In this document: one piece after another, positions 5,793 to 17,819 of the stretch
How the letters are laid out: every line of letters begins with the position of its first letter
Position numbering within the stretch: position 1 is the stretch's first letter
Sequence record: NC_074634.1
Strand: one strand, 5' to 3'
Length of the DNA stretch: 26,097 nt
The notes under the pieces: generated by a model
Databases searched by the model: none
What the model was told of the DNA's origin: nothing
Seen by the model: only the letters and a program-made list of their open reading frames with translations
Made by a program: the position numbers and the translations under genes

Positions 5793-6812
5793 ATGGCAAA
5801 AACACTCATTTTGACTATGGGATATTCTTCAATTAAAAATGTCGCTGAAGATATTGCATCAGTCGTCGGTAATGCAGTGATTGATGTCGAACCAACTTTA
5901 TACGTAAATAACGTCAACAAATTCGATAGACTTATTGTATTTGTCCCATTTACTCCGCCTTTACTGAATAACTACTTGTTAGTTTACAATTATTTTCAGG
6001 GTGAGAAGTATTTCTATACGACAGTTGACGGAAAACCAGTTTTACAAGCCACAAATGAGTATATTGCAAGAAATATAAAGTATATACCAAATTCTCAGTT
6101 TTCAGCTGAAAATCTAAAATCTGCTAATCTTGGTGTTGATATTCCAGTTTTCCATGGGGTAAATTTCGACATAGTGAAAAAAGCAGAACAATTAGTTCCA
6201 AAATTGAGACAGAAACTAGATTTAGACTTTCCAGATAGCATAAAAATTGGAATTGTTACGGGGATGACAAAAAGGAAGAATATCGATTTGTTTGTCGAAA
6301 CAACTCGTTACTTAAATGAAAAAATGCCAGATGTTGCTAAAAATGTTCACTTCTTTGTAATTTCTCATGCAGATTTCCAAAAACTTGAAGTTCCGCAAAA
6401 CGTTCACTTTGTTGCACAGTTTGGTTACCAAAGCAGAGAAAAAGTATTTGCATTTTACGGTTCTATGGATTATGTATTTGTCCCATCTGGATGTGAAGGT
6501 TTTGGTCTCCCAGTCCTTGAGGCAATGGCTATGGGCACGCCGGTTATACACATGGCTATTCCACCGTTCACTGAATTTACATCATGGCAGTGGAACTTTT
6601 TGTTTAAAGATGACGACGTCATAGAATATTACGATAAAGACCGTGGTCAAATATGGAAAATTCATAGATTTAAACCAGAAACTGGGGCATTAGCGATAGC
6701 GACTGCTGTCATGGCAAGTGATAGAGAAGAAAGAAGTCGTCATCTTAAAGATTTAGCTAAAAAATATGATATTAAGTTTTTGTATAAAAGATTTTTAGAG
6801 GGTTTCGAATAA
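5793..6812 (+). CDS. Glycosyltransferase, GT-B fold (GT4-like; SIRV ORF335-like)
   Basis: FVPSGCEGFGLPVLEAMAMGTPVI signature and KRKN nucleotide-sugar-binding motif. Confidence 0.93.
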   Translation: MAKTLILTMGYSSIKNVAEDIASVVGNAVIDVEPTLYVNNVNKFDRLIVFVPFTPPLLNNYLLVYNYFQGEKYFYTTVDGKPVLQATNEYIARNIKYIPNSQFSAENLKSANLGVDIPVFHGVNFDIVKKAEQLVPKLRQKLDLDFPDSIKIGIVTGMTKRKNIDLFVETTRYLNEKMPDVAKNVHFFVISHADFQKLEVPQNVHFVAQFGYQSREKVFAFYGSMDYVFVPSGCEGFGLPVLEAMAMGTPVIHMAIPPFTEFTSWQWNFLFKDDDVIEYYDKDRGQIWKIHRFKPETGALAIATAVMASDREERSRHLKDLAKKYDIKFLYKRFLEGFE

Positions 6813-7739
6813 TGCATAAACAGTGCAGGGTCCAGTTGCCCAGGCATAGACATTTGATGGATTGTTGACTGAAAATTCTAAAATATCCCCTGGTAAAATT
6901 GGGAAATTGTTATATAGTTGATTTCCAATGTAAACAATATAATTTGATAAGTTTTGTAATATAATTTTTACAGTTTCTATCGCTGGACCAGCATAAATTG
7001 GCTGTGGAGTTGTTGAAATTGACAGTTGCAAACCCTGGATTGCGGGCGGAGACATGTAAAGCGTTAATTTGTTTATTGCGTTTGTTAAGGAGTTCATGGC
7101 TAAATAAACGTAAGCAAGTGCATAAAGCAGGGCGTCAGCAACTGAATAAATTGCATTTGATAATCCTATAACTATCTGATTTGTTAATTTTGCGCTAACC
7201 AAATAGATATTTTCGTAAACATTTTGTATTAATTGTGGTAAATATAAGACTGGAGAAATTACAGTTTTTAATTGATTATCAACTCCAATTACAACTTGAT
7301 ATAGGGTTTGATAAACATTTGCAATTTCTTGTTGTAATGCGCTCTGTGTCTGTGTAACTGTCCCCGCAGTTAATTTGGATATTGCGCTATAAACGTCATA
7401 AGGCATTTGTACAATTGCTTCATATAATTGCAATTGACTGTTCAAAATTGCTTGAATTTGTTGTATTGCAGAACCTACAAATCCTGCGATATAGATGGGG
7501 TCCTCCTCCGTTATAACGGGTTGTCCTGCGACATACACTGCTTCTGAAAAATTCCCAACTTGCGCAGTAATATTGTTTGGAACGTAAAGATTGCCATTTT
7601 GAAATAATTGTCTATCGATCAATGATCCGCCAAAATAAATTTCCGATAATGTTAGGACTGCGGTATTCCACATAGCGGATGTTAAGCGCTGGAATGGACT
7701 TGCTAAAAGGCTACTGATGGAGGCATATTGAATGCTCAT
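6795..7739 (-). CDS. Putative minor virion/fibre protein (314 aa), paralogue of the N-terminal half of ORF595
   Basis: N-terminal LTSAMWNTAVLTL...QNGNL, a central amphipathic helical segment and a C-terminal beta domain (ILQNLSNY..PILPGDILEFSVNNPSNV), all alignable with ORF595. Confidence 0.7.
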   Translation of the reverse strand: MSIQYASISSLLASPFQRLTSAMWNTAVLTLSEIYFGGSLIDRQLFQNGNLYVPNNITAQVGNFSEAVYVAGQPVITEEDPIYIAGFVGSAIQQIQAILNSQLQLYEAIVQMPYDVYSAISKLTAGTVTQTQSALQQEIANVYQTLYQVVIGVDNQLKTVISPVLYLPQLIQNVYENIYLVSAKLTNQIVIGLSNAIYSVADALLYALAYVYLAMNSLTNAINKLTLYMSPPAIQGLQLSISTTPQPIYAGPAIETVKIILQNLSNYIVYIGNQLYNNFPILPGDILEFSVNNPSNVYAWATGPCTVYALFETL

Positions 7740-7785
7740 GATTTAAATTTATATGCTTATAAGCTTAAAAATGATACATTTAATT

Positions 7786-8124
7786 ATGAGTCTTGACAAT
7801 ATTTTTGGACCAGTTAGACTCATTGTCGATAAATTAAAAGAATTGGAAATGAGAGGGGAGGCTTATGGATTTTCTCAATATTTGCCACAATCAATAATTT
7901 TACACAGAGTGACAGAAAATGGGGCATTATATCAGATATTTATACCGTCATTCCCTTACTATTTTGAATTTCTTGTCGAAAAAGACCCAAAAACTATGAT
8001 GTTGCAAATTTCAGACTATAGAATTGTTTATCCAGCACCAGTAAAAATTTCAGATTCACAAATTATGAAAGAACTAATCCAAGACTATCTTACTATGCAA
8101 CTTGGAGGTGGTGAAAATGAGTGA
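7786..8124 (+). CDS. Hypothetical protein (about 112 aa)
   Basis: Divergent from ORF314 and overlaps the start of the next gene. Start set at MSLDNIFG (7786); 7753 is the alternative. Confidence 0.7.
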   Translation: MSLDNIFGPVRLIVDKLKELEMRGEAYGFSQYLPQSIILHRVTENGALYQIFIPSFPYYFEFLVEKDPKTMMLQISDYRIVYPAPVKISDSQIMKELIQDYLTMQLGGGENE

Positions 8125-8365
8125 AGCCACTTTAATTCTTACTACAATTTCCACAAGTACAACTATAATATTATCAATTCTTACTCTTTACTATAAAATA
8201 AAACAAATGTTTCGTGAGGCAGTGAAAGAAATTGTAAAACAGGAATTGGATAATTTAGTGAGAGAGATTGCAAAAATAAAAGAAAAACAAGATGAACAAC
8301 AAAAAGATATTGAATACTTAAAACAAGAAATTGAAGAAATAAAAAAGAAAATTGAAAAATTATAA
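8117..8365 (+). CDS. Membrane-anchored coiled-coil protein (82 aa)
   Basis: Hydrophobic N-terminus (TLILTTISTSTTIILSILTLYY) followed by a heptad-rich charged tail. RBS GGTGA before ATG 8117. Confidence 0.75.
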   Translation: MSEATLILTTISTSTTIILSILTLYYKIKQMFREAVKEIVKQELDNLVREIAKIKEKQDEQQKDIEYLKQEIEEIKKKIEKL

Positions 8366-8572
8366 TCACTTGACGGTTTTCTCTCTTACTTCCTTCAGAA
8401 TTTTGATAACTTCTTGTGCTTTTTTGTATAGCTCAGATTTTCTAATATTTTCATCCTCAACTGTTGCTAATTCCAACGCCAAGTTGTCTAAGGCGACAAA
8501 CAGCTTAGCGGAAAATTCTTTATCTTGTTTTATCTTTGGTTTTATTTCTTCTATTGTTTCTTTTTCACTCAT
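8366..8572 (-). CDS. Hypothetical helical protein (68 aa)
   Basis: Overlaps the GNAT stop codon, has a GGTGA RBS upstream, and is the last gene of the - strand run starting at ORF482. Confidence 0.7.
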   Translation of the reverse strand: MSEKETIEEIKPKIKQDKEFSAKLFVALDNLALELATVEDENIRKSELYKKAQEVIKILKEVREKTVK

Positions 8573-9062
8573 CTTTTTTCACCTCGTTTTTCGTTTTTTT
8601 GTCTTTTTCGCTTGCATTTAAATATTTTACGAAAACTGGGGTATTTGTTCTTGGTGTATTCCCCACATATTCAAACCCTGCATTCTTGTACAGTGCGTTA
8701 GAATGATTTGGAAAACCTAAAGTCCAAAGCACTTCAATTCCATAAGATTTCAGCAAATCTGCAAGTTTTTCTAAAAATTCGACTAGGTAATCTCCAGGCG
8801 CAGTTTTAGTCACTCTTCTAATGAAATAAGATCTGTCAATTGGAATTTTGTATTTTTCTGCGACAAAACGAAATGGTATCGAATCGTTGATCCATACGAT
8901 AGCCACTATGAAATTATCGCATTCGTATGCAAAATATTTCTGGATCTTTGAAGCCCCTCCGCCATGTGGTATACCCTGGGCATGATATTTCGCAATTAGC
9001 AATCTTGCTAATTCAATATCTTTCTTGTCTTCTAATTCAATTACTTTACATTCTTCTGGCAT
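8565..9062 (-). CDS. GNAT-fold acetyltransferase, Mom-like
   Basis: LIAKYH near the N-terminus, YFIRRV, and LWTLGFPNHSNALYKNAGFEYVG (GNAT motif B, LYxxxGF). Confidence 0.75.
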   Translation of the reverse strand: MPEECKVIELEDKKDIELARLLIAKYHAQGIPHGGGASKIQKYFAYECDNFIVAIVWINDSIPFRFVAEKYKIPIDRSYFIRRVTKTAPGDYLVEFLEKLADLLKSYGIEVLWTLGFPNHSNALYKNAGFEYVGNTPRTNTPVFVKYLNASEKDKKTKNEVKKDE

Positions 9063-9113
9063 TTCAAATATTATTATTCAACATATGCTTTATAAGCAAA
9101 TTGGTATCCAGTT

Positions 9114-9461
9114 TTAGGCATTTATGATGACTTCATCATCTTTACCTACAATTTTAAATTTCCATTTTTTAGTTTTTTTGAAATAAACCAGCACTGCAGG
9201 TTTACAATTACAAAAATTAAACATTTCACAGAAATTAAATAGTTTATCAATTTGGAATTTATCAATCTTTTTCGAAAGTTTTGAAGTTGACTTAACTTCA
9301 ATTGCAAAAATTACGCCATCTTTAGTCGCTATAATGTCGGGTAATGGTTGCTTACCAGAACCAGAAACCGGAATTCTTGCGACTTTGTAACCTTCATTTT
9401 TTAACAAATCCAGTGCTTTATATTCATAATATTTCCCAGAATTATGGATGTTTATCTTCAT
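9114..9461 (-). CDS. hjc: Holliday junction resolvase (Hjc family)
   Basis: GKYYEYKALDLLKNEGYKVARIPVSG..PDIIA..AIEVKST is the PD-(D/E)xK Hjc signature. Confidence 0.95.
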   Translation of the reverse strand: MKINIHNSGKYYEYKALDLLKNEGYKVARIPVSGSGKQPLPDIIATKDGVIFAIEVKSTSKLSKKIDKFQIDKLFNFCEMFNFCNCKPAVLVYFKKTKKWKFKIVGKDDEVIINA

Positions 9462-9469
9462 ATTTTTTA

Positions 9470-10885
9470 TTATCTGTTTGCTATGTTTTTAAAACCTTTA
9501 TTGTAAAATATAGGTTTATAATTTTGCAAGTACACTTTTTTCTGATCTAATTTTCTTTGTGTTTGTATCCTGCCGAGACCTTGTAGTTGTTCCCCGATTT
9601 GTTGTGCAAACTGAAGATCTGCGTCAGAAAGACCGTATAATTTCCATTTTTGTTTCCAATATTGCAAAAATTGATCATACGGTAGTGTCCTGGGACCAGC
9701 GGTATACGATAAGTTACCCTGGTATGTATATCTTGCGACTTGCAGTATTGCAGATGCCACCATTTTTGCATACCAGATGTTGTTATATTTCTTATTTACA
9801 ATTTTTTGTATTCTTTCGTATAATTCATAATTTGAAATATATGTTTCTGCATATTGAGAATTTGAAATATTTGTCGCGCCAGGTCCTAATTCTTGTAAAT
9901 GTTGTCCAAATATTTGACCGAAAACTGAAATTATTGCCCTCTCTGTCGATAAAATTGCAGATAATTGAATGTCGTTTAAGTTCTGATCTGTAGGAAAGTC
10001 TGGCATCAAAACGTTAAAGTCTAGAGGCGTAAGATCTAGGATTATACCAAGTGCATGTGAAAAGTTTTGAATTTTTATGTTGTCGGCAAGAAGTTGATAG
10101 TCATTTTCTCTTTCTGAAAAAGCGGACCGGTCAAACCAAGAGACGTCAAGTGCAACTCCGCTATCAATTATATTGTTTATCAGCGACAAAAATGCTAACA
10201 AATATTTTGCTAAGTCTGGTAAAGAATTGAAATATTGTTGTGGAGTTGTGTTTTTCTGTTGAGCCAATTTTGATAGTGCGTCAGCCACTCCAGTTTTTTC
10301 AACAAGTGAGTAGAGATAATTGTCAACCGCAGGAATTTGTGTTTTTCCAACTCCAAGATTTTCAAATGTTGTAACAGTTACTGTTGTCGGCGGATTAGCA
10401 AAATACGATTCTAATTTTTTACATGCCTGATTATTGAAAATTACTCCAGGGGCAGGGGCGTAAACTGAGGCATCAAAACTTGTTTCATCAAATATTGCAA
10501 TTTGGTACAGTACTGAACAATTTTCGACATATTGATCATAAAGTGAAGTAAAACTGTTGAGGGCGTCAAGTGCTGAAGTTGACGATAATGTCGCTAAATT
10601 GAAAATATTTGATTGCGCAGTGTTTGGTATGAAATTATTCAACACTGATGCTGAAAAATTGTTTATTGCATTTAGGAAATTAATTATGATTTGTGCGAAA
10701 GCAATTCCGTAATTGACATTCATATACGCTGGGACTACAACATTTTCAAGTGAAGTCGGTAAAGTGCTTTCAATTCCTGCTGACAACATTGCCTTGAAGG
10801 CAGGGTAAACATTTTGATTAAATATCTTATTGTAGAGATGATATTTCATTTGTGCAACTGATCTTGAACCTTTTTTCTTTGGCAT
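9470..10885 (-). CDS. Minor virion protein (SIRV2 ORF488-like)
   Basis: Size, N/Q/S-rich composition and position beside hjc. Start set at MPKKKGSRS (10885); 10918 is the alternative. Confidence 0.7.
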   Translation of the reverse strand: MPKKKGSRSVAQMKYHLYNKIFNQNVYPAFKAMLSAGIESTLPTSLENVVVPAYMNVNYGIAFAQIIINFLNAINNFSASVLNNFIPNTAQSNIFNLATLSSTSALDALNSFTSLYDQYVENCSVLYQIAIFDETSFDASVYAPAPGVIFNNQACKKLESYFANPPTTVTVTTFENLGVGKTQIPAVDNYLYSLVEKTGVADALSKLAQQKNTTPQQYFNSLPDLAKYLLAFLSLINNIIDSGVALDVSWFDRSAFSERENDYQLLADNIKIQNFSHALGIILDLTPLDFNVLMPDFPTDQNLNDIQLSAILSTERAIISVFGQIFGQHLQELGPGATNISNSQYAETYISNYELYERIQKIVNKKYNNIWYAKMVASAILQVARYTYQGNLSYTAGPRTLPYDQFLQYWKQKWKLYGLSDADLQFAQQIGEQLQGLGRIQTQRKLDQKKVYLQNYKPIFYNKGFKNIANR

Positions 10886-10926
10886 TTCACATCTGTTTAT
10901 TTTTTCTTTTCTTTTCATTTTTATTG

Positions 10927-10960
10927 CTCAATATCCAACAGTCATATTCATAATATTAAT
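10927..10960 (+). repeat. 34-bp inverted repeat, left arm (overlaps palindrome copy B, 10946-10969)
   Basis: CTCAATATCCAACAGTCATATTCATAATATTAAT matches the reverse complement of 13190-13223 at 33/34 nt. Confidence 0.9.
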
Positions 10961-11023
10961 TATATGCATGTTGCGCATTGAATTTATTTTAACTTGTTGC
11001 GACAAAATAAATAGTGATAAAAA

Positions 11024-11320
11024 ATGAGCCTAACTGGTTTAGAACAAATAGTATTAATTGGATTTTTAGCAGTTGTCGGGGCATTAGTTATTGGATTTGT
11101 AATCTCAGAGATTGCATATATTTTCAATAATAGGCAGGCAACTGAGGCATTTACAAATGCTATGCAACAAATGTCACAAACTACTGTCGTGGCAGTTGAG
11201 AGCGTAAAGGAGACGACAATTACTGCTATCAATTCGATAGCCGGTATGGCGGGATTGAATGACGTAAACTCATTAGCGCATGAAAAAGTGAAACAAAATA
11301 GCCAGTCTCAACAAAAATAA
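11024..11320 (+). CDS. Virus-associated pyramid protein (PVAP, SIRV2 P98 homologue)
   Basis: 98 aa with an N-terminal TM helix, then QMSQTTVVAVESVKETTITAIN and DVNSLAHEK, matching the recalled P98 segments QMSKSTVTAIESIKDTT and DVNSLAREK. Confidence 0.93.
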   Translation: MSLTGLEQIVLIGFLAVVGALVIGFVISEIAYIFNNRQATEAFTNAMQQMSQTTVVAVESVKETTITAINSIAGMAGLNDVNSLAHEKVKQNSQSQQK

Positions 11321-11350
11321 TTATTTTTTTAACCTCTTTTTCCGAATATA

Positions 11351-13138
11351 ATGATCATGAGTAATTTACCCTATCCTTTAAAATACAAATTGCCACTTCA
11401 GTATTTGTCGGTTGAAGATTGGAATAATTTTGTAAATGATCTTCTTCTAGTTTATAATTCACCAACTGGAATTTTAGCACAATATTATAATAATGGAAAT
11501 TTGCAAAATTTAAATGAAGTTTTTGCAAAAACTCTAAACGTTTTGCAACTTTATATTAATGGATATCAGGCATTATACAATCTCAAGAAAGTACTTGCGT
11601 ATACTTTCGGAAATGTTTTCTCATACTATACAACTTACCCGCCAATTAATTTTTCAAATGTTGAGCAGTTAACAAAACTGCCAAGTTTTTATGTGCAAAA
11701 ATACAATATACCTGTTGCAAAAGTCCAACAGATTTTCCAGATATATAATTTCATATTTGAAAAACATTTACCGCAAATTACAAAAACTATGCAAGTGCTA
11801 ATTCCAAAACTTTCATATCGTTATTTACCTTCAATAATTTCCGGCGGGATGGCGACAATTTCAGGATCGCAAACATTATCCCAAATTTTACAAAATGAGT
11901 TTGGAATTTCAAATTTTTCAACATGGAAAGGAGTAACAATTGAAAATTTAAGCAGTAACAACTTGTTTATCAATAATGCAATTGTGCTAATGCCGAAACA
12001 ATGTTTAAAAATTTCTGCCTCTTCACCGTCAGAAGTTACAATTACTGCTCAACAACCATCATTAATTTCAACATTATTAGAATTTGGGGCAATACCTGTT
12101 ACCGCCTATGCGATAACGGTAACGAATAGCCAATCTGATCCTACGTCTTCAAATTTTCAACAATTGCTAACGCTTAATCTATCTGGTATAATTTCTTCAC
12201 CTTCACAATTACTAAATTTGAAATTCTGTCAAGATGTAAACTGCAATACACAATTGTATGCATGGATTGAATATTATACCAGTGATTTATCCACAGTCTA
12301 CATCTGGGTTTTGTTACCCGGTGGAATACCGGCAAATTCTTCAATAACGATATACATGTTTGTAACAAATACAAATCAATATCCTTACACTGGGGTAAAT
12401 TCATATTATAACACGCAATATGATAACGGAATGTATGTTTTTGACGCCTACATGAACTTCATGGGAACTAGCCCAATACCGTCAAACTATAACGCATATA
12501 CAAATATTTCTGGTTTTCCACAATTTGTCGCTGAAAGCGGAACAACTCCAGGGTATTTATATACATTCAATAATGCCAGTGGTAGTTATGATACCGTTTA
12601 TATATCAGCCCCAAATTCTGCAAGAACCCCAGAAATATTTGAAGGCATGGCATATTACAACGGCAGTGCAGACCAACAAGGTATTATGTTTTTCGGGGAA
12701 CTATCGTCAGGGTGGTGTGGGGTTAGCAATCCTGGAAATGCATACTATCTCTGCGACAGTTGGACGACTGATTGGGATCCATACGATGGGGCTGCTTATA
12801 TTTGGCAGGGGTCAACACAAGAAAATTCGTATGGCGAAAGTCTCTTTACGTCAGACGGTTACAATTTCTATCAAGTCATTGCAACGTCAAGTGAAATAAT
12901 TTTCAATGGTGCGACAACAAATAATCCGACCACACCGTATGCACAACTCAACATTCAAAATGTTTTCACTTACAGTGGATCAATTACAGTTTATGGTGAT
13001 GTAGTAGGAACAATTGATGGTTCTGGAGGTGCAACTCACTACGGTTATTGGTACTATGTCAGGGCAAGGGCTTATCCGCCTAATGGAGTAATGCCGACTA
13101 ATTCGCAACCGCAGAAAATTATCGCATATATTACATGA
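11351..13138 (+). CDS. Putative fibre/adhesin with C-terminal DUF2341-like lectin/beta-sandwich region (595 aa)
   Basis: FQQLLTLN...LKF...LYAWIE...IWVLLP..IPANSSITIYM is the DUF2341 pattern. Ends in a Tyr/Gly/Thr-rich tail with YVRARAYPPNGVMP. Confidence 0.75.
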   Translation: MIMSNLPYPLKYKLPLQYLSVEDWNNFVNDLLLVYNSPTGILAQYYNNGNLQNLNEVFAKTLNVLQLYINGYQALYNLKKVLAYTFGNVFSYYTTYPPINFSNVEQLTKLPSFYVQKYNIPVAKVQQIFQIYNFIFEKHLPQITKTMQVLIPKLSYRYLPSIISGGMATISGSQTLSQILQNEFGISNFSTWKGVTIENLSSNNLFINNAIVLMPKQCLKISASSPSEVTITAQQPSLISTLLEFGAIPVTAYAITVTNSQSDPTSSNFQQLLTLNLSGIISSPSQLLNLKFCQDVNCNTQLYAWIEYYTSDLSTVYIWVLLPGGIPANSSITIYMFVTNTNQYPYTGVNSYYNTQYDNGMYVFDAYMNFMGTSPIPSNYNAYTNISGFPQFVAESGTTPGYLYTFNNASGSYDTVYISAPNSARTPEIFEGMAYYNGSADQQGIMFFGELSSGWCGVSNPGNAYYLCDSWTTDWDPYDGAAYIWQGSTQENSYGESLFTSDGYNFYQVIATSSEIIFNGATTNNPTTPYAQLNIQNVFTYSGSITVYGDVVGTIDGSGGATHYGYWYYVRARAYPPNGVMPTNSQPQKIIAYIT

Positions 13139-13189
13139 TTTGATTATTTTTTCCTTAAATGCAATAAATCAAACGACATAATTCTTATG

Positions 13190-13223
13190 ATTAATATTAT
13201 GAATATGACTGTTGAATATTGAG
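13190..13223 (-). repeat. 34-bp inverted repeat, right arm (overlaps palindrome copy C, 13181-13204)
   Basis: Reverse complement reads CTCAATATTCAACAGTCATATTCATAATATTAAT. Confidence 0.9.
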
Positions 13224-13270
13224 TAACAAAAACTATAATAAATATGTTTGTGCATTTTATTTAGATAGAA

Positions 13271-16200
13271 ATGAGTTTTATACTTTCTGGACTTGAAAGC
13301 CTCGAAACATTCTTTTCAGATGAACTTACTGCCCTGGAAAATTTTACAAATTTTTTGGCAAGTGACGTTGTTTCATTTTTCCAAACTGTTTCAACAGATT
13401 TACAAAATTTCATTTCATTTTTAGCAACTGCAATTAGCGATATTCCGACATTTATACAACAGGGTATATCATATTTTGTACAAGTTTTACAAAATGTATT
13501 TTCTAACGTTGCATCTGCAGTATCTGGATTTGTGCAATATGTTGCTAACGCATTACAAGGATTTTTCCAAGATGTCGCAAATCTAATGCAAGGATTTTTA
13601 AATGCAATATATGGATTTTTCTCAAATATTGCAAACGACCTTGCTAATTTTGTAAGTGGTGCAGTTTCCAATTTTGTACAAGGATTTGGTGCAGTGGGAA
13701 CATACATAGGCTCTGCCATACCGCAAATTATAAATCAGGTCACGCCAATTGTCGCCCCATACCTTTTGGCTAGAATTTTGCCAAATGCAATTGATAGATT
13801 GGCAGAAATTTTACCTGGGATTGAAATCGATTTAGCCCCAGTCGGTTTAGGTGGAAAATTTAACATTAAATTTGGAGAAATTGCAAAAATGATAGGTGAG
13901 CCAACCGCTGATTTGATGAAAGAGATCACAGACGAAATGATGTCGTCATTCAAAGAATTTTTGAAAGAACCGTTTATTTCCGATTTCAAGATCACCACAA
14001 GACAAATTTTCAATAGCATTGGACTTGGCGACTTGCCATTTGCTGATCCATCATACCGCGAAATCACATCTTGGGTAGGCGCAAGGTCATTTCAAGAATT
14101 GAAAGATCATTTAAGGGAGACTTTGTTGCTCACGGGATATCCTGCATGGTTCACTGACGCATTTTTAGAACCGCCTGCCGACGATTACATACCCAGAAAC
14201 CCACTTTTCAGACCAGTTTCAATTCGTGACGTGATTATCGCAACTGAATACGGCTTACTACCTTCATCAGCAGTTGAACAATATGCAGAAAATAACTTAA
14301 TAACGAAAAAAACTGCAAAATTAATGTATCAAAATCAGAATTTGAGATTATTCCAGCGTGTAGTCGAACAAGGAGTCCGATCTTTTGTCGTCCAGCCGGA
14401 TAAAGCTTACGACTTAATGTTGTCTAGTATTTCGTTATCAGGTAAAGATCTATTTACAAAATATTTCGAAATTGAATATCAATTTGCAACGCAGAGGTTT
14501 GCGAAACAAGTCCTCAGATCCCTATTGTCAAGAGCACTATCCAATTTTGGTAGACCTTATATAGATATAAAGTATTTATCTAAAACAGTTGATGAAATTT
14601 ATAAGCAACTAAATCTGCCAAAGGAAATCTCACTCCTGTTTGAACAATTAATTACAGAATCTCAATTAATACAGTACAACGAGTTAATTTTCAGATTTTT
14701 ACAATCAAAAGCTGAAAAAGGAATATTTGATCAAAAAGATGAAGAGAAATTGTTAAAAGATTATAATTTTAACGTTAGTGAATCGCTTTTCATTTTACAA
14801 AATTATGTAGATTTACTTATAACAACTGAAGAAATCCAATTAATTCAACAAAAACTGCAGAATTTCTTTATATCTGACAAAGATGCAGAAAAAGAATTGA
14901 AAAAATTAAAAGTAGATAATAGATATGCAAAACTTTTGATTGAGAGATATTACAATTTGACGTTAATGAAAGAGAAAGCAAACGTATATCTTTCACTGTT
15001 GAAAAAAGGATATTACAACAAACATGAAGCAAAAACCATATTTAAAGCACTAGGTTATACTACAACTGTAATTGATGAACTGTTGGATTTATATTCGCAA
15101 GAAATTGCGACAGAATTACAGATTAAGGTAATCCAACAAAAAGCGCAAATGCTTTTATTAGATGCACAAGAGATTGAAACTGAGCTGAAAAAATTACATG
15201 TATCAGATGCTCTTATCCACGGAATTATAACTGAATATCTGCAAATTCCACTTTTGAAGCAACAAATTGCAATTTATGAATCAATGATCAAGAAGGGATA
15301 CGTAAACGCACAAGAAGCGAAAAAAATATTTTCTGCACTTGGATTTAAACAAACTGCAATTGAACATCTGATCCCACTTTACATGAAAGAAATCGAAATT
15401 GAAGCAATAATTTCGAAATATAAAGCACTCCTTCAACACTTCTTGATTGACGAAAAGACCGCTGAACAAGAATTAAGGAAATTGAATATATCTGATGCTC
15501 TAATTGCCGAACTGTTGGCAGAATATTATCAAGTCCCGTTAGCCGAAAAGGTATTCAATATTTACCTCTCTCTTTTAGAGAAAGGTTATACGACAGTGGA
15601 TACAATTAAGAAAATTCTAGGTTCAAAAAATGTTAATGCAACTGCACTTGCAGAAATTTCAAACGCCTACAATTTCGCAATCGAAATTGAAAACTCTATC
15701 AAATATATACAGTCATTACTGAAAAATTTACTAATTGACGATAAAACTGCGGAACAAGAATTGAGAAAATTAGGCGTTTCTGATACACTGATAAAAGCAA
15801 TAATTGCAGAATACACTCCAATTTTGATAAATATAAAAAGTGTCGCACAAACAATAATTGAAGGGGCAATTTACCACATAAGTAAAGTTCCAATTTCTGT
15901 TGCTCACGTTATACCAGAATTGAAAAAATTAAACATTCCAGATAATCAAATTAATGCGCTAATTAATGAAATTGAATCACAAGTTGCGTTAGAAATTTGG
16001 AGGAAATACTTACCAACACTTTCAGATATTAAAACCGCATTGACTTATAATTACCCTGTCGACAAATTATTGCAATTATCTCTCATACCTGCTGAATTAT
16101 TCAATCTACATGCGGACTTAACTAGATATGAAATTGTTGCAAAAGAAGTACAAAATTTAAAGTCGTATTACTCAAAATTATTAACTTACAACATTACAAA

Positions 16201-16618
16201 TCCACAATTAGAACAAATACTGAGACAATACGGGGTTAGTGATCAATTATTGCAAGTTTTACAATTACATGCACAACTAGAAAAAATTCTGACTGCATAT
16301 CAGGAGTTATACTTAACGCCGTCAAAAGTATTGTCAATCGCTGAATATGTTTCAAACCCAGATCAATTAATTCAAAAAGTATTTAGAGAGTATAACGTAC
16401 CGGCTGACTTACAGAGTATCTATCTGGAATACGCAAGAAATAGAAGACTAAGAAAATACATTAGTGAAATAATATCAACAATTTCTCTACTATTTGAAAA
16501 GCATAAGATATCTTTAGACCAGGCAGTCCAGTATTTGTTGCAATTCAAAAAATACGGGCTAACTGACGAAGAAATTGAGTTGATCAAATTAAATTGGCAA
16601 TTAAGGAGTGCGTACTAA
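13271..16618 (+). CDS. Large terminal-fibre/minor virion protein (SIRV2 P1070-like, 1115 aa)
   Basis: Largest ORF. N-terminal amphipathic repeats with 11/7-residue Phe spacing, and C-terminal 96-aa helical repeats. Confidence 0.8.
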   Translation: MSFILSGLESLETFFSDELTALENFTNFLASDVVSFFQTVSTDLQNFISFLATAISDIPTFIQQGISYFVQVLQNVFSNVASAVSGFVQYVANALQGFFQDVANLMQGFLNAIYGFFSNIANDLANFVSGAVSNFVQGFGAVGTYIGSAIPQIINQVTPIVAPYLLARILPNAIDRLAEILPGIEIDLAPVGLGGKFNIKFGEIAKMIGEPTADLMKEITDEMMSSFKEFLKEPFISDFKITTRQIFNSIGLGDLPFADPSYREITSWVGARSFQELKDHLRETLLLTGYPAWFTDAFLEPPADDYIPRNPLFRPVSIRDVIIATEYGLLPSSAVEQYAENNLITKKTAKLMYQNQNLRLFQRVVEQGVRSFVVQPDKAYDLMLSSISLSGKDLFTKYFEIEYQFATQRFAKQVLRSLLSRALSNFGRPYIDIKYLSKTVDEIYKQLNLPKEISLLFEQLITESQLIQYNELIFRFLQSKAEKGIFDQKDEEKLLKDYNFNVSESLFILQNYVDLLITTEEIQLIQQKLQNFFISDKDAEKELKKLKVDNRYAKLLIERYYNLTLMKEKANVYLSLLKKGYYNKHEAKTIFKALGYTTTVIDELLDLYSQEIATELQIKVIQQKAQMLLLDAQEIETELKKLHVSDALIHGIITEYLQIPLLKQQIAIYESMIKKGYVNAQEAKKIFSALGFKQTAIEHLIPLYMKEIEIEAIISKYKALLQHFLIDEKTAEQELRKLNISDALIAELLAEYYQVPLAEKVFNIYLSLLEKGYTTVDTIKKILGSKNVNATALAEISNAYNFAIEIENSIKYIQSLLKNLLIDDKTAEQELRKLGVSDTLIKAIIAEYTPILINIKSVAQTIIEGAIYHISKVPISVAHVIPELKKLNIPDNQINALINEIESQVALEIWRKYLPTLSDIKTALTYNYPVDKLLQLSLIPAELFNLHADLTRYEIVAKEVQNLKSYYSKLLTYNITNPQLEQILRQYGVSDQLLQVLQLHAQLEKILTAYQELYLTPSKVLSIAEYVSNPDQLIQKVFREYNVPADLQSIYLEYARNRRLRKYISEIISTISLLFEKHKISLDQAVQYLLQFKKYGLTDEEIELIKLNWQLRSAY
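14894..15830 (+). repeat. Four EL[KR]KL repeat units at an exact 288-bp (96-aa) period
   Basis: EL[KR]KL codons start at 14894, 15182, 15470 and 15758. The first three are followed by Y-x-S-x-x-x-K-G-Y half-units. Confidence 0.85.
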
Positions 16619-16619
16619 A

Positions 16620-17819
16620 ATGTCCTACGTAAGCAAATATTCCATAATTAGATCAGCAGATTGGAATCAAATTGTACAAACTTTACAATTAATTAATAGT
16701 ATGTGGCAACAAACATTAAGTGCGATACAACAACTTACAAATATAAATGCACAAGTAAACTATCCAAATTATCAAACACAAGAACAAAATGCAATAAATA
16801 TAATACAAAATCTTTTTAATTATTTGCAAAATCCAACAATAACAACTCCAACCCCAAATATTCCAACTGCAAGTCCCGGAATGATTTTAACTGCAAGCAT
16901 GATGAATTCTTTGACAAATGCAGTGCAAAAATTGTACAATTCAATAATGCCAACGCCTTTAACAGAAATTTCAGAGGTTTCAGGTGAAGATATCGTAACT
17001 TCAGATCATTGGAATAAAATCGTTAAAGCAATAAATGAATTAAAAAATGCATTTAGCGTAATAAATGTACCGTCACAAGGGGGTCAATTTTACCTAACGT
17101 CACCGTATGTATTTATAGACCCTGGAGTGGCAGGACTTGTAATCACTGCAGAAGTTCTTGTTAAAAATCATATTTTATACATATTTGTATATACCCCACA
17201 AGCAAAATCAAATATATGGTATGAATTTGTTGGATTAGAAAAAATAGATAATATTTTCGCCGGCGGGAATAATGCAAACTTTAACATTACAGAATCCATA
17301 AAAATACGAAATATGTATCTGTATGGGGATTCTGGCTTTATAAAACAATACGATAATTCAATAACTGAAAATATAATGACTGTTGGTTCCCAAAACTATG
17401 TTGAAACAATTAATAATTCAATTGCAAAAAGTGTATTAATGATTGGGGATAAAGGAAATATACAATCATTCGACTATTCAATAATTGAAAATATAATAAT
17501 GGTTGGATATTCAACTGATATTGAGCCATGTAATAATTCAATAATAAAAAGAATATTAATGATTGGGAATTCCGGCACTATAAGACCAATTGATTATTCA
17601 ATAATTGAAAATGCAATAATTGATGGAAATAACAATTCTGTAAATACATATGATTCCTCAGTAATCCAAAATCTTTTCATATGTGGCGAACAAAATTCAA
17701 TCTCAGGATCTGGTATTGTAAATCTCTATTTATGTAATCCAAACAATAATGTCGGTAGTGGAGTACAAAATATAATAACAGGTTCTCCATTATGCCAGAT
17801 TATCTGTGGTTCAAGTTGA
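16620..17819 (+). CDS. Putative fibre/spike protein with C-terminal beta-solenoid (399 aa)
   Basis: Three WN/MN modules in the N-terminal region and 20-aa tandem repeats at the C-terminus. ATG 16620 lies just after the ORF1115 stop. Confidence 0.75.
   Translation: MSYVSKYSIIRSADWNQIVQTLQLINSMWQQTLSAIQQLTNINAQVNYPNYQTQEQNAINIIQNLFNYLQNPTITTPTPNIPTASPGMILTASMMNSLTNAVQKLYNSIMPTPLTEISEVSGEDIVTSDHWNKIVKAINELKNAFSVINVPSQGGQFYLTSPYVFIDPGVAGLVITAEVLVKNHILYIFVYTPQAKSNIWYEFVGLEKIDNIFAGGNNANFNITESIKIRNMYLYGDSGFIKQYDNSITENIMTVGSQNYVETINNSIAKSVLMIGDKGNIQSFDYSIIENIIMVGYSTDIEPCNNSIIKRILMIGNSGTIRPIDYSIIENAIIDGNNNSVNTYDSSVIQNLFICGEQNSISGSGIVNLYLCNPNNNVGSGVQNIITGSPLCQIICGSS
17295..17714 (+). repeat. Seven 60-bp (20-aa) coding tandem repeats
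   Basis: Units start at 17295, 17355, 17415, 17475, 17535, 17595 and 17655, with consensus [NY]SIIxNIxMxG. Confidence 0.85.

Follow-up and report, generated by a model that had tools for sequence, protein, structure and literature searches.

A WN motif shared by three fibre-like proteins of the rudivirus SSRV1 and an N-terminal module common to two of them

Three fibre-like proteins of the rudivirus SSRV1 carry a short stretch built around a tryptophan-asparagine (WN) pair, which in gp14 and gp22 belongs to a longer N-terminal module, while gp24 is a different protein from gp14 and gp22 and shares the motif alone. The source DNA is the complete SSRV1 genome (32% G+C; sequence record NC_074634.1), and the window, i.e. 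the whole stretch of DNA that was analysed, comprises 26,097 nucleotides. That the WN module or motif is shared across these proteins is real and was confirmed in the present analysis, and comparison of the two sequence families shows gp14 and gp22 to be paralogues. An earlier note, derived from the letters of this DNA alone, had suggested a receptor-binding kit in which a common docking or trimerisation module attaches alternative adhesins to the virion ends. The best-supported reading, to which a probability of roughly 0.55 is assigned, is that gp14, gp22 and gp24 together form, at the ends of the virion, a modular kit for host recognition; this reading is plausible and partly supported, and it rests on synteny, fold, the pattern of divergence and one annotated virion protein. 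A prior description of a WN module or motif shared by rudivirus proteins was not found in the literature. The genes concerned are located in the window as follows.

6795..7739, minus strand: gp14 (ORF314), annotated as hypothetical
11351..13138, plus strand: gp22 (ORF595), annotated as 'putative viral structural protein'
13271..16618, plus strand: gp23 (ORF1115), a P1070-type minor structural protein, whose gene lies between gp22 and gp24
16620..17819, plus strand: gp24 (ORF399), annotated as hypothetical

All peptides that had been quoted from ORF314, ORF595 and ORF399 were found where the earlier note had placed them. The motif reads QRLTSAMWNTAVLTL in gp14 and QYLSVEDWNNFVNDL in gp22, at residues 17-31 in either case, and occurs in three copies in gp24, centred on W15-N16, M95-N96 and W131-N132. 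Counted from the asparagine, the positions in common are P(-10), L/I(-6), S/T(-5), W/M(-1), N(0), V/I/T(+3), L(+6) and Y(+10). For comparison, SSRV1 and ten further rudivirus records were used, representing seven genera and, in 11 loci, 725 open reading frames (ORFs) of at least 50 residues each. Throughout this set, matches to the pattern WN..[VLIT]..[LIVA] are nearly confined to the gp14, gp22 and gp24 families, with four or five strays. The motif is kept in the orthologues of these families in every rudivirus genus, in the form FQRLTSxMWNT... (residue 24) in the gp14 family, L.YLS..DWNNFV..L (residues 21-26) in the gp22 family and ..ISS..WN.IV in the gp24 family. Within the SSRV1 proteome the strict pattern was seen three times, compared with 0.011 occurrences expected from shuffling, a figure that is merely indicative because the pattern was chosen after the data were seen.

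The relationship between gp14 and gp22 extends beyond the motif. BLASTP aligns the two proteins in two collinear segments (expect values, E, of 0.006 and 0.046), and hhalign comparison of the family alignments (17 + 15 sequences) matches residues 15-312 of gp14 to residues 15-244 of gp22 with a probability (Prob) of 91.8 and an E of 7.5e-7; restricted to the first 61 columns, the same comparison yields an E of 3.9e-5. In the joint alignment of the first 85 residues, termed A4, the residues Y5, L11, P15, L19, W24, N25 and L31 are invariant in both families, N50, A59 and G72 are almost invariant across them, and the start M-S-(I/L/V)-x-Y is common to both. The N-terminal homology that the earlier note had ascribed to all three proteins holds for gp14 and gp22, whereas gp24 shares a motif of 16-25 residues alone; the NGNL stretch and the C-terminal beta domain said to be common to ORF314 and ORF595 were recovered in the BLASTP segments and the hhalign match. 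Since the homology spans the whole of gp14 and residues 15-244 of gp22, gp22 can be described as a gp14-like scaffold, consisting of N-module, helical stalk and beta domain, to which a head has been added, which upholds the proposal of an ORF314-like scaffold carrying a DUF2341 head. Across genera, the N-terminal 80 residues are the best-conserved part of gp22. In the literature, the N-terminal 244 residues of the gp22 family were nowhere found described as a paralogue of the ORF269/ORF314 family, and a motif common to the N-terminal part of the gp22 family and the ORF309/ORF399 family was nowhere found described either. The parts of the two proteins are delimited as follows.

7485..7739, minus strand: N-module of gp14, residues 1-85 (alignment A4 and three-copy model), with the start MS.xY, P15, L19-T20, W24-N25, Y35, N48-G-N-L51, A59 and V-x-V-x-G72
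7635..7697, minus strand: WN motif proper of gp14, residues 15-35, PFQRLTSAMWNTAVLTLSEIY
7053..7499, minus strand: central helical stalk of gp14, residues ~81-229 (secondary structure of the AlphaFold2, AF2, model)
6798..7049, minus strand: C-terminal beta domain of gp14, residues 231-314, homologous to gp22 residues ~195-244
11351..12082, plus strand: ORF314-like scaffold of gp22, residues 1-244 (hhalign and alignment A4)
11393-11455, plus strand: WN motif of gp22, residues 15-35, within the N-module, residues 1-85
12086..13135, plus strand: head of gp22, residues 246-595, containing DUF2341

The head of gp22 contains DUF2341 (PF10102) at residues 294-343 (bases 12230-12379), with a score of 25.7 bits and an E of 1.6e-5 at a curated gathering cut-off of 23.4 bits; among eight relatives, seven score above this cut-off as well (23.7-36.4 bits) and one reaches 20.3. 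As a whole, gp22 is a member of PHROG 7548 (E 1.8e-239, residues 5-594), and tblastn with gp22 matched all rudiviruses over 96-100% of its length. SIRV2 ORF564 and SRV ORF581 are orthologues with 39-49% identity over 96-97% of the length, and DUF2341 is present throughout. In the records of SRV, SMRV1 and SIRV3, members of the family are annotated by the depositors as 'structural protein'. Outside the rudiviruses, the head is shared with the bicaudavirus SMV1 (35.6% identity, residues 247-489, E 2e-15); Los Azufres archaeal virus 1 has it too (54.8% identity, E 1e-28). Because both of these viruses share the DUF2341 head without the scaffold, the comparison suggests that head domains have been exchanged between archaeal virus families.

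As to gp14, it constitutes a core rudiviral protein of no assigned function (PHROG 7221), with orthologues in 42 of 42 rudivirus records; a word search returned 141 database proteins, every one of them a close orthologue. Across genera both ends of the protein are kept, while the stalk varies by genus in length and sequence (25-37% identity between genera). The C-terminal domain, with 67-93% identity, is among the best-conserved parts, and for this reason gp14 looks like a conserved structural piece and not like an alternative adhesin, so that the corresponding suggestion for ORF314 found no support. One protein 88% identical to gp14 (P0005) is filed at NCBI as Sulfuracidifex metallicus on a 2.2-kb contig, which probably represents rudivirus DNA within the assembly of a host; if so, it would hint at another host of the SSRV1 virus group. 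An internal stretch of gp14, AMNSLTNAINKL, which resembles the second motif copy of gp24, was considered as a fourth copy or a product of gene conversion and rejected, given that it is confined to Hoswirudivirus (other genera have ATVGLANTINKL) and that the DNA is identical at 25 of 48 bases.

Structural modelling places the module of gp14 in a subunit interface. The AF2 monomer, with an overall predicted local distance difference test (pLDDT) of 47, has long helices between residues 81 and 229, followed by a beta domain (residues 236-313, pLDDT ~70). Searched against PDB, the gp14 family profile matched coiled-coil chains alone, either designed or trimeric; no relevant PDB sequence was retrieved with gp22, with the gp14 family or with the N-module profile, and a feature search for gp14 in a structure atlas returned its own clusters alone. 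Three copies of gp14 modelled with ESMFold2 reached an interaction prediction score from aligned errors (ipSAE) of 0.46 (0.50, 0.46 and 0.41 in the individual runs), compared with 0.00 for the best of three controls; the runs had at least 52% of their contacts in common, and the partner pLDDT was at least 58. Among the solved structures used for calibration, 20 of 30 homo-pairs attained the ipSAE mark, compared with 1 of 23 single chains; because this calibration used two copies and other alignments, the three-copy model is taken as support, not as proof. The modelled interface includes residues 11-79 of the N-module, among them W24, N25, V28, L31, I34, Y35 and the NGNL stretch, the stalk residues 189, 193, 197, 201, 204, 208, 211, 215, 218 and 222, which are spaced by 3 or 4, and residues 255-312 of the C-terminal beta domain. 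On this basis gp14 is modelled as a parallel three-chain coiled-coil assembly with the WN module in its interface, and the shared N-module probably drives parallel oligomerisation. In its predicted interface spacing and in the coiled-coil matches of its centre, gp14 resembles the stalks of trimeric autotransporter adhesins; these matches to coiled-coil fibre stalks are compositional (E 1e-4 to 0.4), and no homology is claimed.

The third protein, gp24, is built differently. Its AF2 model, computed from nine sequences, is confident (pLDDT 90, predicted template modelling score, pTM, 0.88) and predicts a four-helix bundle, a right-handed beta-helix and a Cys-containing C-terminal cap with a short helix. 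Each motif copy begins a helix in this model, with S/T immediately ahead.

16620..17048, plus strand: four-helix region of gp24, residues 1-143, with helices at 12-45, 48-70, 92-109 and 128-142
16647-16697, plus strand: motif copy R1, residues 10-26
16875-16937, plus strand: motif copy R2, residues 86-106
16983-17045, plus strand: motif copy R3, residues 122-142
17052..17780, plus strand: beta-helix, residues 145-387, with regular strands in the AF2 model

Comparison of the model with 48,161 PDB chains by VIA-align gave Z values of 15-20 at a root-mean-square deviation of 3-5 A over 220-275 aligned residues, whereby residues 145-390 superpose on TibA (4q1q), Ag43 (7koh), K5A lyase (2x3h), phi29 gp12 (3gq7) and the CBA120 tailspikes. 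Hence, the statement that ORF399 ends in a beta-solenoid of the tailspike or adhesin type is borne out, with a sequence identity to these adhesins and tailspikes of 7-14% and many tied rows, i.e. as a generic fold match. Catalytic residues were not identified in gp24, for which no search aimed at a catalytic motif was made. Foldseek with the gp24 model gave no PDB match below an E of 0.1, and a shape search of the atlas gave no specific match; in BFVD the model found rudiviral relatives alone, including SRV ORF533, SBRV1 ORF523 and SIRV8 ORF45. For the N-terminal WN four-helix bundle, no counterpart outside the rudiviruses was found by Foldseek, in BFVD or by the atlas shape search. Since the BFVD relatives and the profile searches agree, the gp24 family is taken to be present in all genera; a scan of IMG/VR and metagenome contigs with the family alignment added ARV1 and ARV2 as sole members. 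A word search with gp24 came back empty and missed even gp24, possibly because of composition filtering, so that this negative is given no weight.

Several features of the gp24 family were noted alongside. Six cysteines are invariant in the alignment of five Italian rudiviruses, of which C355, C372, C392 and C396 belong to the region of the C-terminal cap. Relatives differ in how many beta-helix coils they have, with ~54 residues missing in MRV1 and ~20 in ARV1. In Usarudivirus and SRV, an extra N-terminal region of ~250 residues is faintly similar to the protein's own C-terminal beta-helix, because of which the WN bundle may lie between two solenoid parts there; proteins with such an extra region are those of L009 (SIRV8 ORF45), L015, L016, L018 and L007 (SRV ORF533).

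Of the WN module that had been attributed to ORF399, the helix-start motif of 16-25 residues is present three times; the module of ~80 residues is absent, and gp24 is devoid of its NGNL...VxVxG half. Internally, R1 and R3 are related with an E of 4e-4. With rudiviral profiles alone, hhalign connects gp24 to gp14 and gp22 at E 0.0024 over 17 columns and at E 0.04 over 23 columns. A hidden Markov model (HMM) trained on the gp14 and gp22 motifs alone and run over 1039 ORFs found the gp24 family in 12 of the 14 top hits outside the training families, hits which, belonging to one family, are not independent events. After divergent N-module proteins from the large HMM search described below had been added, the broadened motif profile of 41 sequences matched R1 with Prob 84 and E 7.3e-6 and R2 with Prob 61 and E 8e-5.

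These values bear on the strongest competing explanation, according to which solely gp14 and gp22 are related, while gp24 would be an independent beta-helix protein whose WN motif converged on a capping pattern of helix starts and has neither origin nor partner in common with theirs. The first half of the motif, i.e. a hydrophobic residue, S/T, three further residues and an aromatic one, is the generic hydrophobic-staple and capping-box pattern of helix starts, because of which the gp24 motif may be convergent. Convergence is also favoured by the motif-length and weak hhalign matches from rudiviral profiles (E 0.0024-0.24, Prob 0.3-12%), by the missing NGNL...VxVxG half and by the replacement of W in R2 and R3 by F, Y, M or I in other genera. 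Moreover, in Usarudivirus, Japarudivirus and Azorudivirus an extension of 200-250 residues precedes the WN bundle, which is thus internal there; hence, the bundle does not qualify as a general docking module at the N-terminus. On the other hand, the conserved positions reach past the cap (N 0, V/I +3, L +6, Y +10, and P -10 in R2), the profile whose training excluded gp24 puts members of the gp24 family at the top of the 1039 ORFs, the broadened profile reaches E 7.3e-6 and 8e-5, proteins of the P0136 type from uncultured viruses bridge the gp14 and gp24 R1 forms, and synteny ties the genes to the same fibre gene. Taken together, an independent origin of the gp24 motif appears unlikely, although it is to be reckoned with more than any other alternative.

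A connection of these proteins to the virion ends is suggested by gene order, by the neighbouring gp23 and by the annotation of the gp22 family as structural. The SIRV1 protein gp30, an orthologue of gp23, is reported to form the terminal filaments (PMC9319562); because SIRV1 gp34 equals ORF268, gene order identifies gp30 as ORF1070. The genes cluster with the P1070-type fibre gene in SRV, where ORF1059-533-581-286 are contiguous on one strand, and in SIRV2, where the order is 1070-564-309-(158a)-269, with ORF269 as the orthologue of gp14 and ORF309 as that of gp24. In SMRV1, orf11 and orf12 are adjacent. The protein gp23 itself comprises four tandem repeats of 96 residues within residues ~530-920, with starts near 540, 636, 732 and 828, each of which contains (L/F)(I/L)(D/S)..(K/Q)..E.EL(K/R)KL; over the first 230 residues, there are matches to tape-measure PHROGs of phages (best E 2.4e-12) and to Baculo_PEP_C.

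The terminal fibres of SSRV1 bind the heavily glycosylated type IV pili of S. solfataricus, probably via glycans (PMC7347861), and SSRV1, ARV2, MRV1 and ARV3 infect different host genera; according to the discoverers of SSRV1, its close relatives use hosts from three genera and the 'host recognition module' is undefined (bioRxiv 10.1101/2020.01.16.907410). Among the large conserved genes, gp24 is the most divergent between SSRV1 and ARV2, MRV1 and ARV3 (64, 53 and 38% identity, respectively), compared with 76-94% for the flanking genes of the virion module. Within gp24, the helical region retains 81, 64 and 51% identity versus 51, 36 and 25% for the beta-helix, which is hence the fastest-diverging conserved part among these host-switching relatives. 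Among these four viruses with different hosts, gp24 would fit a distal part that varies by host, gp22 shows but mild differences, and gp14, with its conserved C-terminus, does not fit. In the reading of a modular host-recognition kit, the WN helix would act as an oligomerisation or docking element that holds gp14, gp22 and gp24 on a terminal complex around gp23, and the distal domains, i.e. the head of gp22 and the beta-helix of gp24, would attach to the host's glycosylated type IV pilus. The beta-helix of gp24 would accordingly be the main candidate for a host-range determinant in the host-switching Hoswirudivirus group.

A number of results weigh against this reading. A virion location is annotated for the gp22 family alone and not for gp14 or gp24; the SRV and SMRV1 records mark 134, 464/470, 581/608 and 1059/1106 alone as structural and not the orthologues of gp14 and gp24. 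The strong conservation of the gp14 C-terminal domain belongs here as well, as do the poor monomer model of gp14 (pLDDT 47) and the imposed stoichiometry of three copies in a tool calibrated with two copies and other alignments. Furthermore, gp24 has a confident fold as a monomer (pTM 0.88), its link to the other proteins rests on 16-25 columns with early hhalign runs in the range of E 0.0024-0.24, its motif may be a mere capping pattern, and its bundle is internal in three genera.

The second alternative concerns gp14, which might not be a virion adhesin but an intracellular assembly factor or scaffold, e.g. a chaperone that provides the template for gp22 trimers or joins gp22 in mixed ones; it might also be a purely structural protein of the terminal plug. 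The module would then serve assembly and not the docking of alternative adhesins. In support of this, the SRV and SMRV1 records do not label the orthologues as structural, and both ends are strongly conserved with variation of the stalk alone, which is unlike receptor-binding proteins; furthermore, gp14 corresponds to the gp22 scaffold minus the head, and its SSRV1 gene lies on the other strand at a distance of 3.6 kb from gp22-gp24. Against it, gp14 is kept in every rudivirus, a short form is found beside a P1070-type gene in distant uncultured viruses, the protein alone is modelled as a stable fibre-like three-chain coiled coil, and its gene is contiguous with three other genes on one strand in SRV; in addition, gel-based proteomics would easily miss minor terminal proteins of low copy number. 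Such a role of gp14 is regarded as improbable. Finally, a resemblance by chance or composition, as might arise in a genome of 32% G+C from AT-rich, N/I/L/Q-rich proteins, a short motif and a pattern defined post hoc, is highly improbable in view of the three strict matches against 0.011 expected, the invariance of the motif over seven genera with flanking sequence at 25-60% identity and its occurrence in viruses of 41% G+C with quite different amino-acid composition, and for gp14 and gp22, with an hhalign E of 7.5e-7, it is effectively refuted.

The N-module was also encountered beyond the classified rudiviruses. An HMM search with A4 over 1.84 billion representatives returned 27 proteins at E <= 1e-3. 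Among these are proteins of uncultured viruses that carry the N-module with other C-termini, namely P0136 (213 residues), P0137 (309 residues), P0141 (239 residues), P0146 (196 residues) and P0147 (305 residues), all of which match the rudiviral ORF314 over the first 85-120 residues alone; for P0136 and P0147, rudiviruses were the sole tblastn matches, limited to the first 28-40% of each protein. In agreement with the modular architecture put forward in the earlier note, the N-module thus behaves as a discrete unit on different C-termini, i.e. the beta domain of gp14, the DUF2341 head of gp22, that of P0136 and, in P0137, P0141, P0146 and P0147, unrelated ones. The motif of P0136 (RSSDWNALV) is intermediate between the gp14 form and the R1 form of gp24 (RSADWNQIV). 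A member of the P0136 cluster with 213 residues is encoded on L022 (ENA ERZ27246786 k141_24876; 26.7 kb, 41% G+C), together with a rudivirus-type capsid protein (Sulf_coat_C), glycosyltransferases and a homologue of gp23 with 1856 residues (phmmer E 2e-29), and the gene following that of the WN protein encodes a further motif copy (206 residues). L022 is an uncultured filamentous-virus-like contig with weak matches to known viruses, and a second metagenome contig, L023, encodes the same protein. On L024, P0141 is encoded 260 bases downstream of a gp23 homologue with 1890 residues (phmmer E 1.9e-18); the phmmer scores of the gp23 homologues of L022 and L024 both carry a large composition bias.

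The same search yielded giant proteins of bacterial appearance, P0135, P0138, P0139, P0140, P0143, P0145 and P0148, which comprise 594-2753 residues with a signal peptide and 3-12 tandem units of ~57 residues, each ending in NGYLSSADWNTFNNKL; one of them is located on a 334-kb contig. Compared with the gp22 motif YLSVEDWNNFVNDL, the unit end NGYLSSADWNTFNNKL is alike at 9 of 14 positions, and profile positions 18-38 are matched three to twelve times in each protein; in P0135, P0138, P0143 and P0148 the likeness to gp22 is confined to the motif. No Pfam, NCBIfam or PDB match was found for the giant repeat proteins, and tblastn of the repeat against phages gave one match, to an unannotated jumbo-phage sequence. 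Two further proteins, P0142 (WD40) and P0144 (LysM), were rejected as N-module homologues and represent repeat artefacts. Because such WD40 and LysM repeat proteins scored too, the summed E-values are unreliable, and the bacterial repeat is considered a lead and not a shown homologue.

In tailed phages, a conserved N-terminal anchor with exchangeable C-terminal domains, including branched sets of tailspikes, is well known. Like these receptor-binding proteins, the SSRV1 paralogues share an N-terminal region and differ distally (beta-helix, DUF2341), and in gp24 a conserved N-terminal part is followed by a distal part that may diverge with the host. Unlike tailed phages, SSRV1-type viruses, which belong to Adnaviria, form helical rods that are non-enveloped and have neither tail nor baseplate; in contrast to phage anchors, the N-module has no match in Pfam, NCBIfam or PDB, and gp24 shares a short motif and not the whole anchor. 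A more far-reaching proposal, which is tentative and at present doubtful, regards the WN N-module as a coupling device in general use among the rod-shaped viruses of archaea, i.e. Rudiviridae and unclassified relatives, that would hang interchangeable host-binding proteins on a P1070-type scaffold, with swap or divergence of the distal domains driving host switching. If this were true, the motif of the bacterial giant proteins would indicate an ancient fibre-assembly element that different domains have in common.

For the biology of the family, the analysis names three concrete candidates for the host-recognition proteins of rudiviruses and gives the conserved and variable parts of each. It shows gp14, by sequence comparison, to be related, as a paralogue without a head, to a known virion protein and finds the N-module on other domains in uncultured viruses, beside homologues of the giant fibre gene gp23. 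Host-range determination in Adnaviria thereby becomes directly testable.

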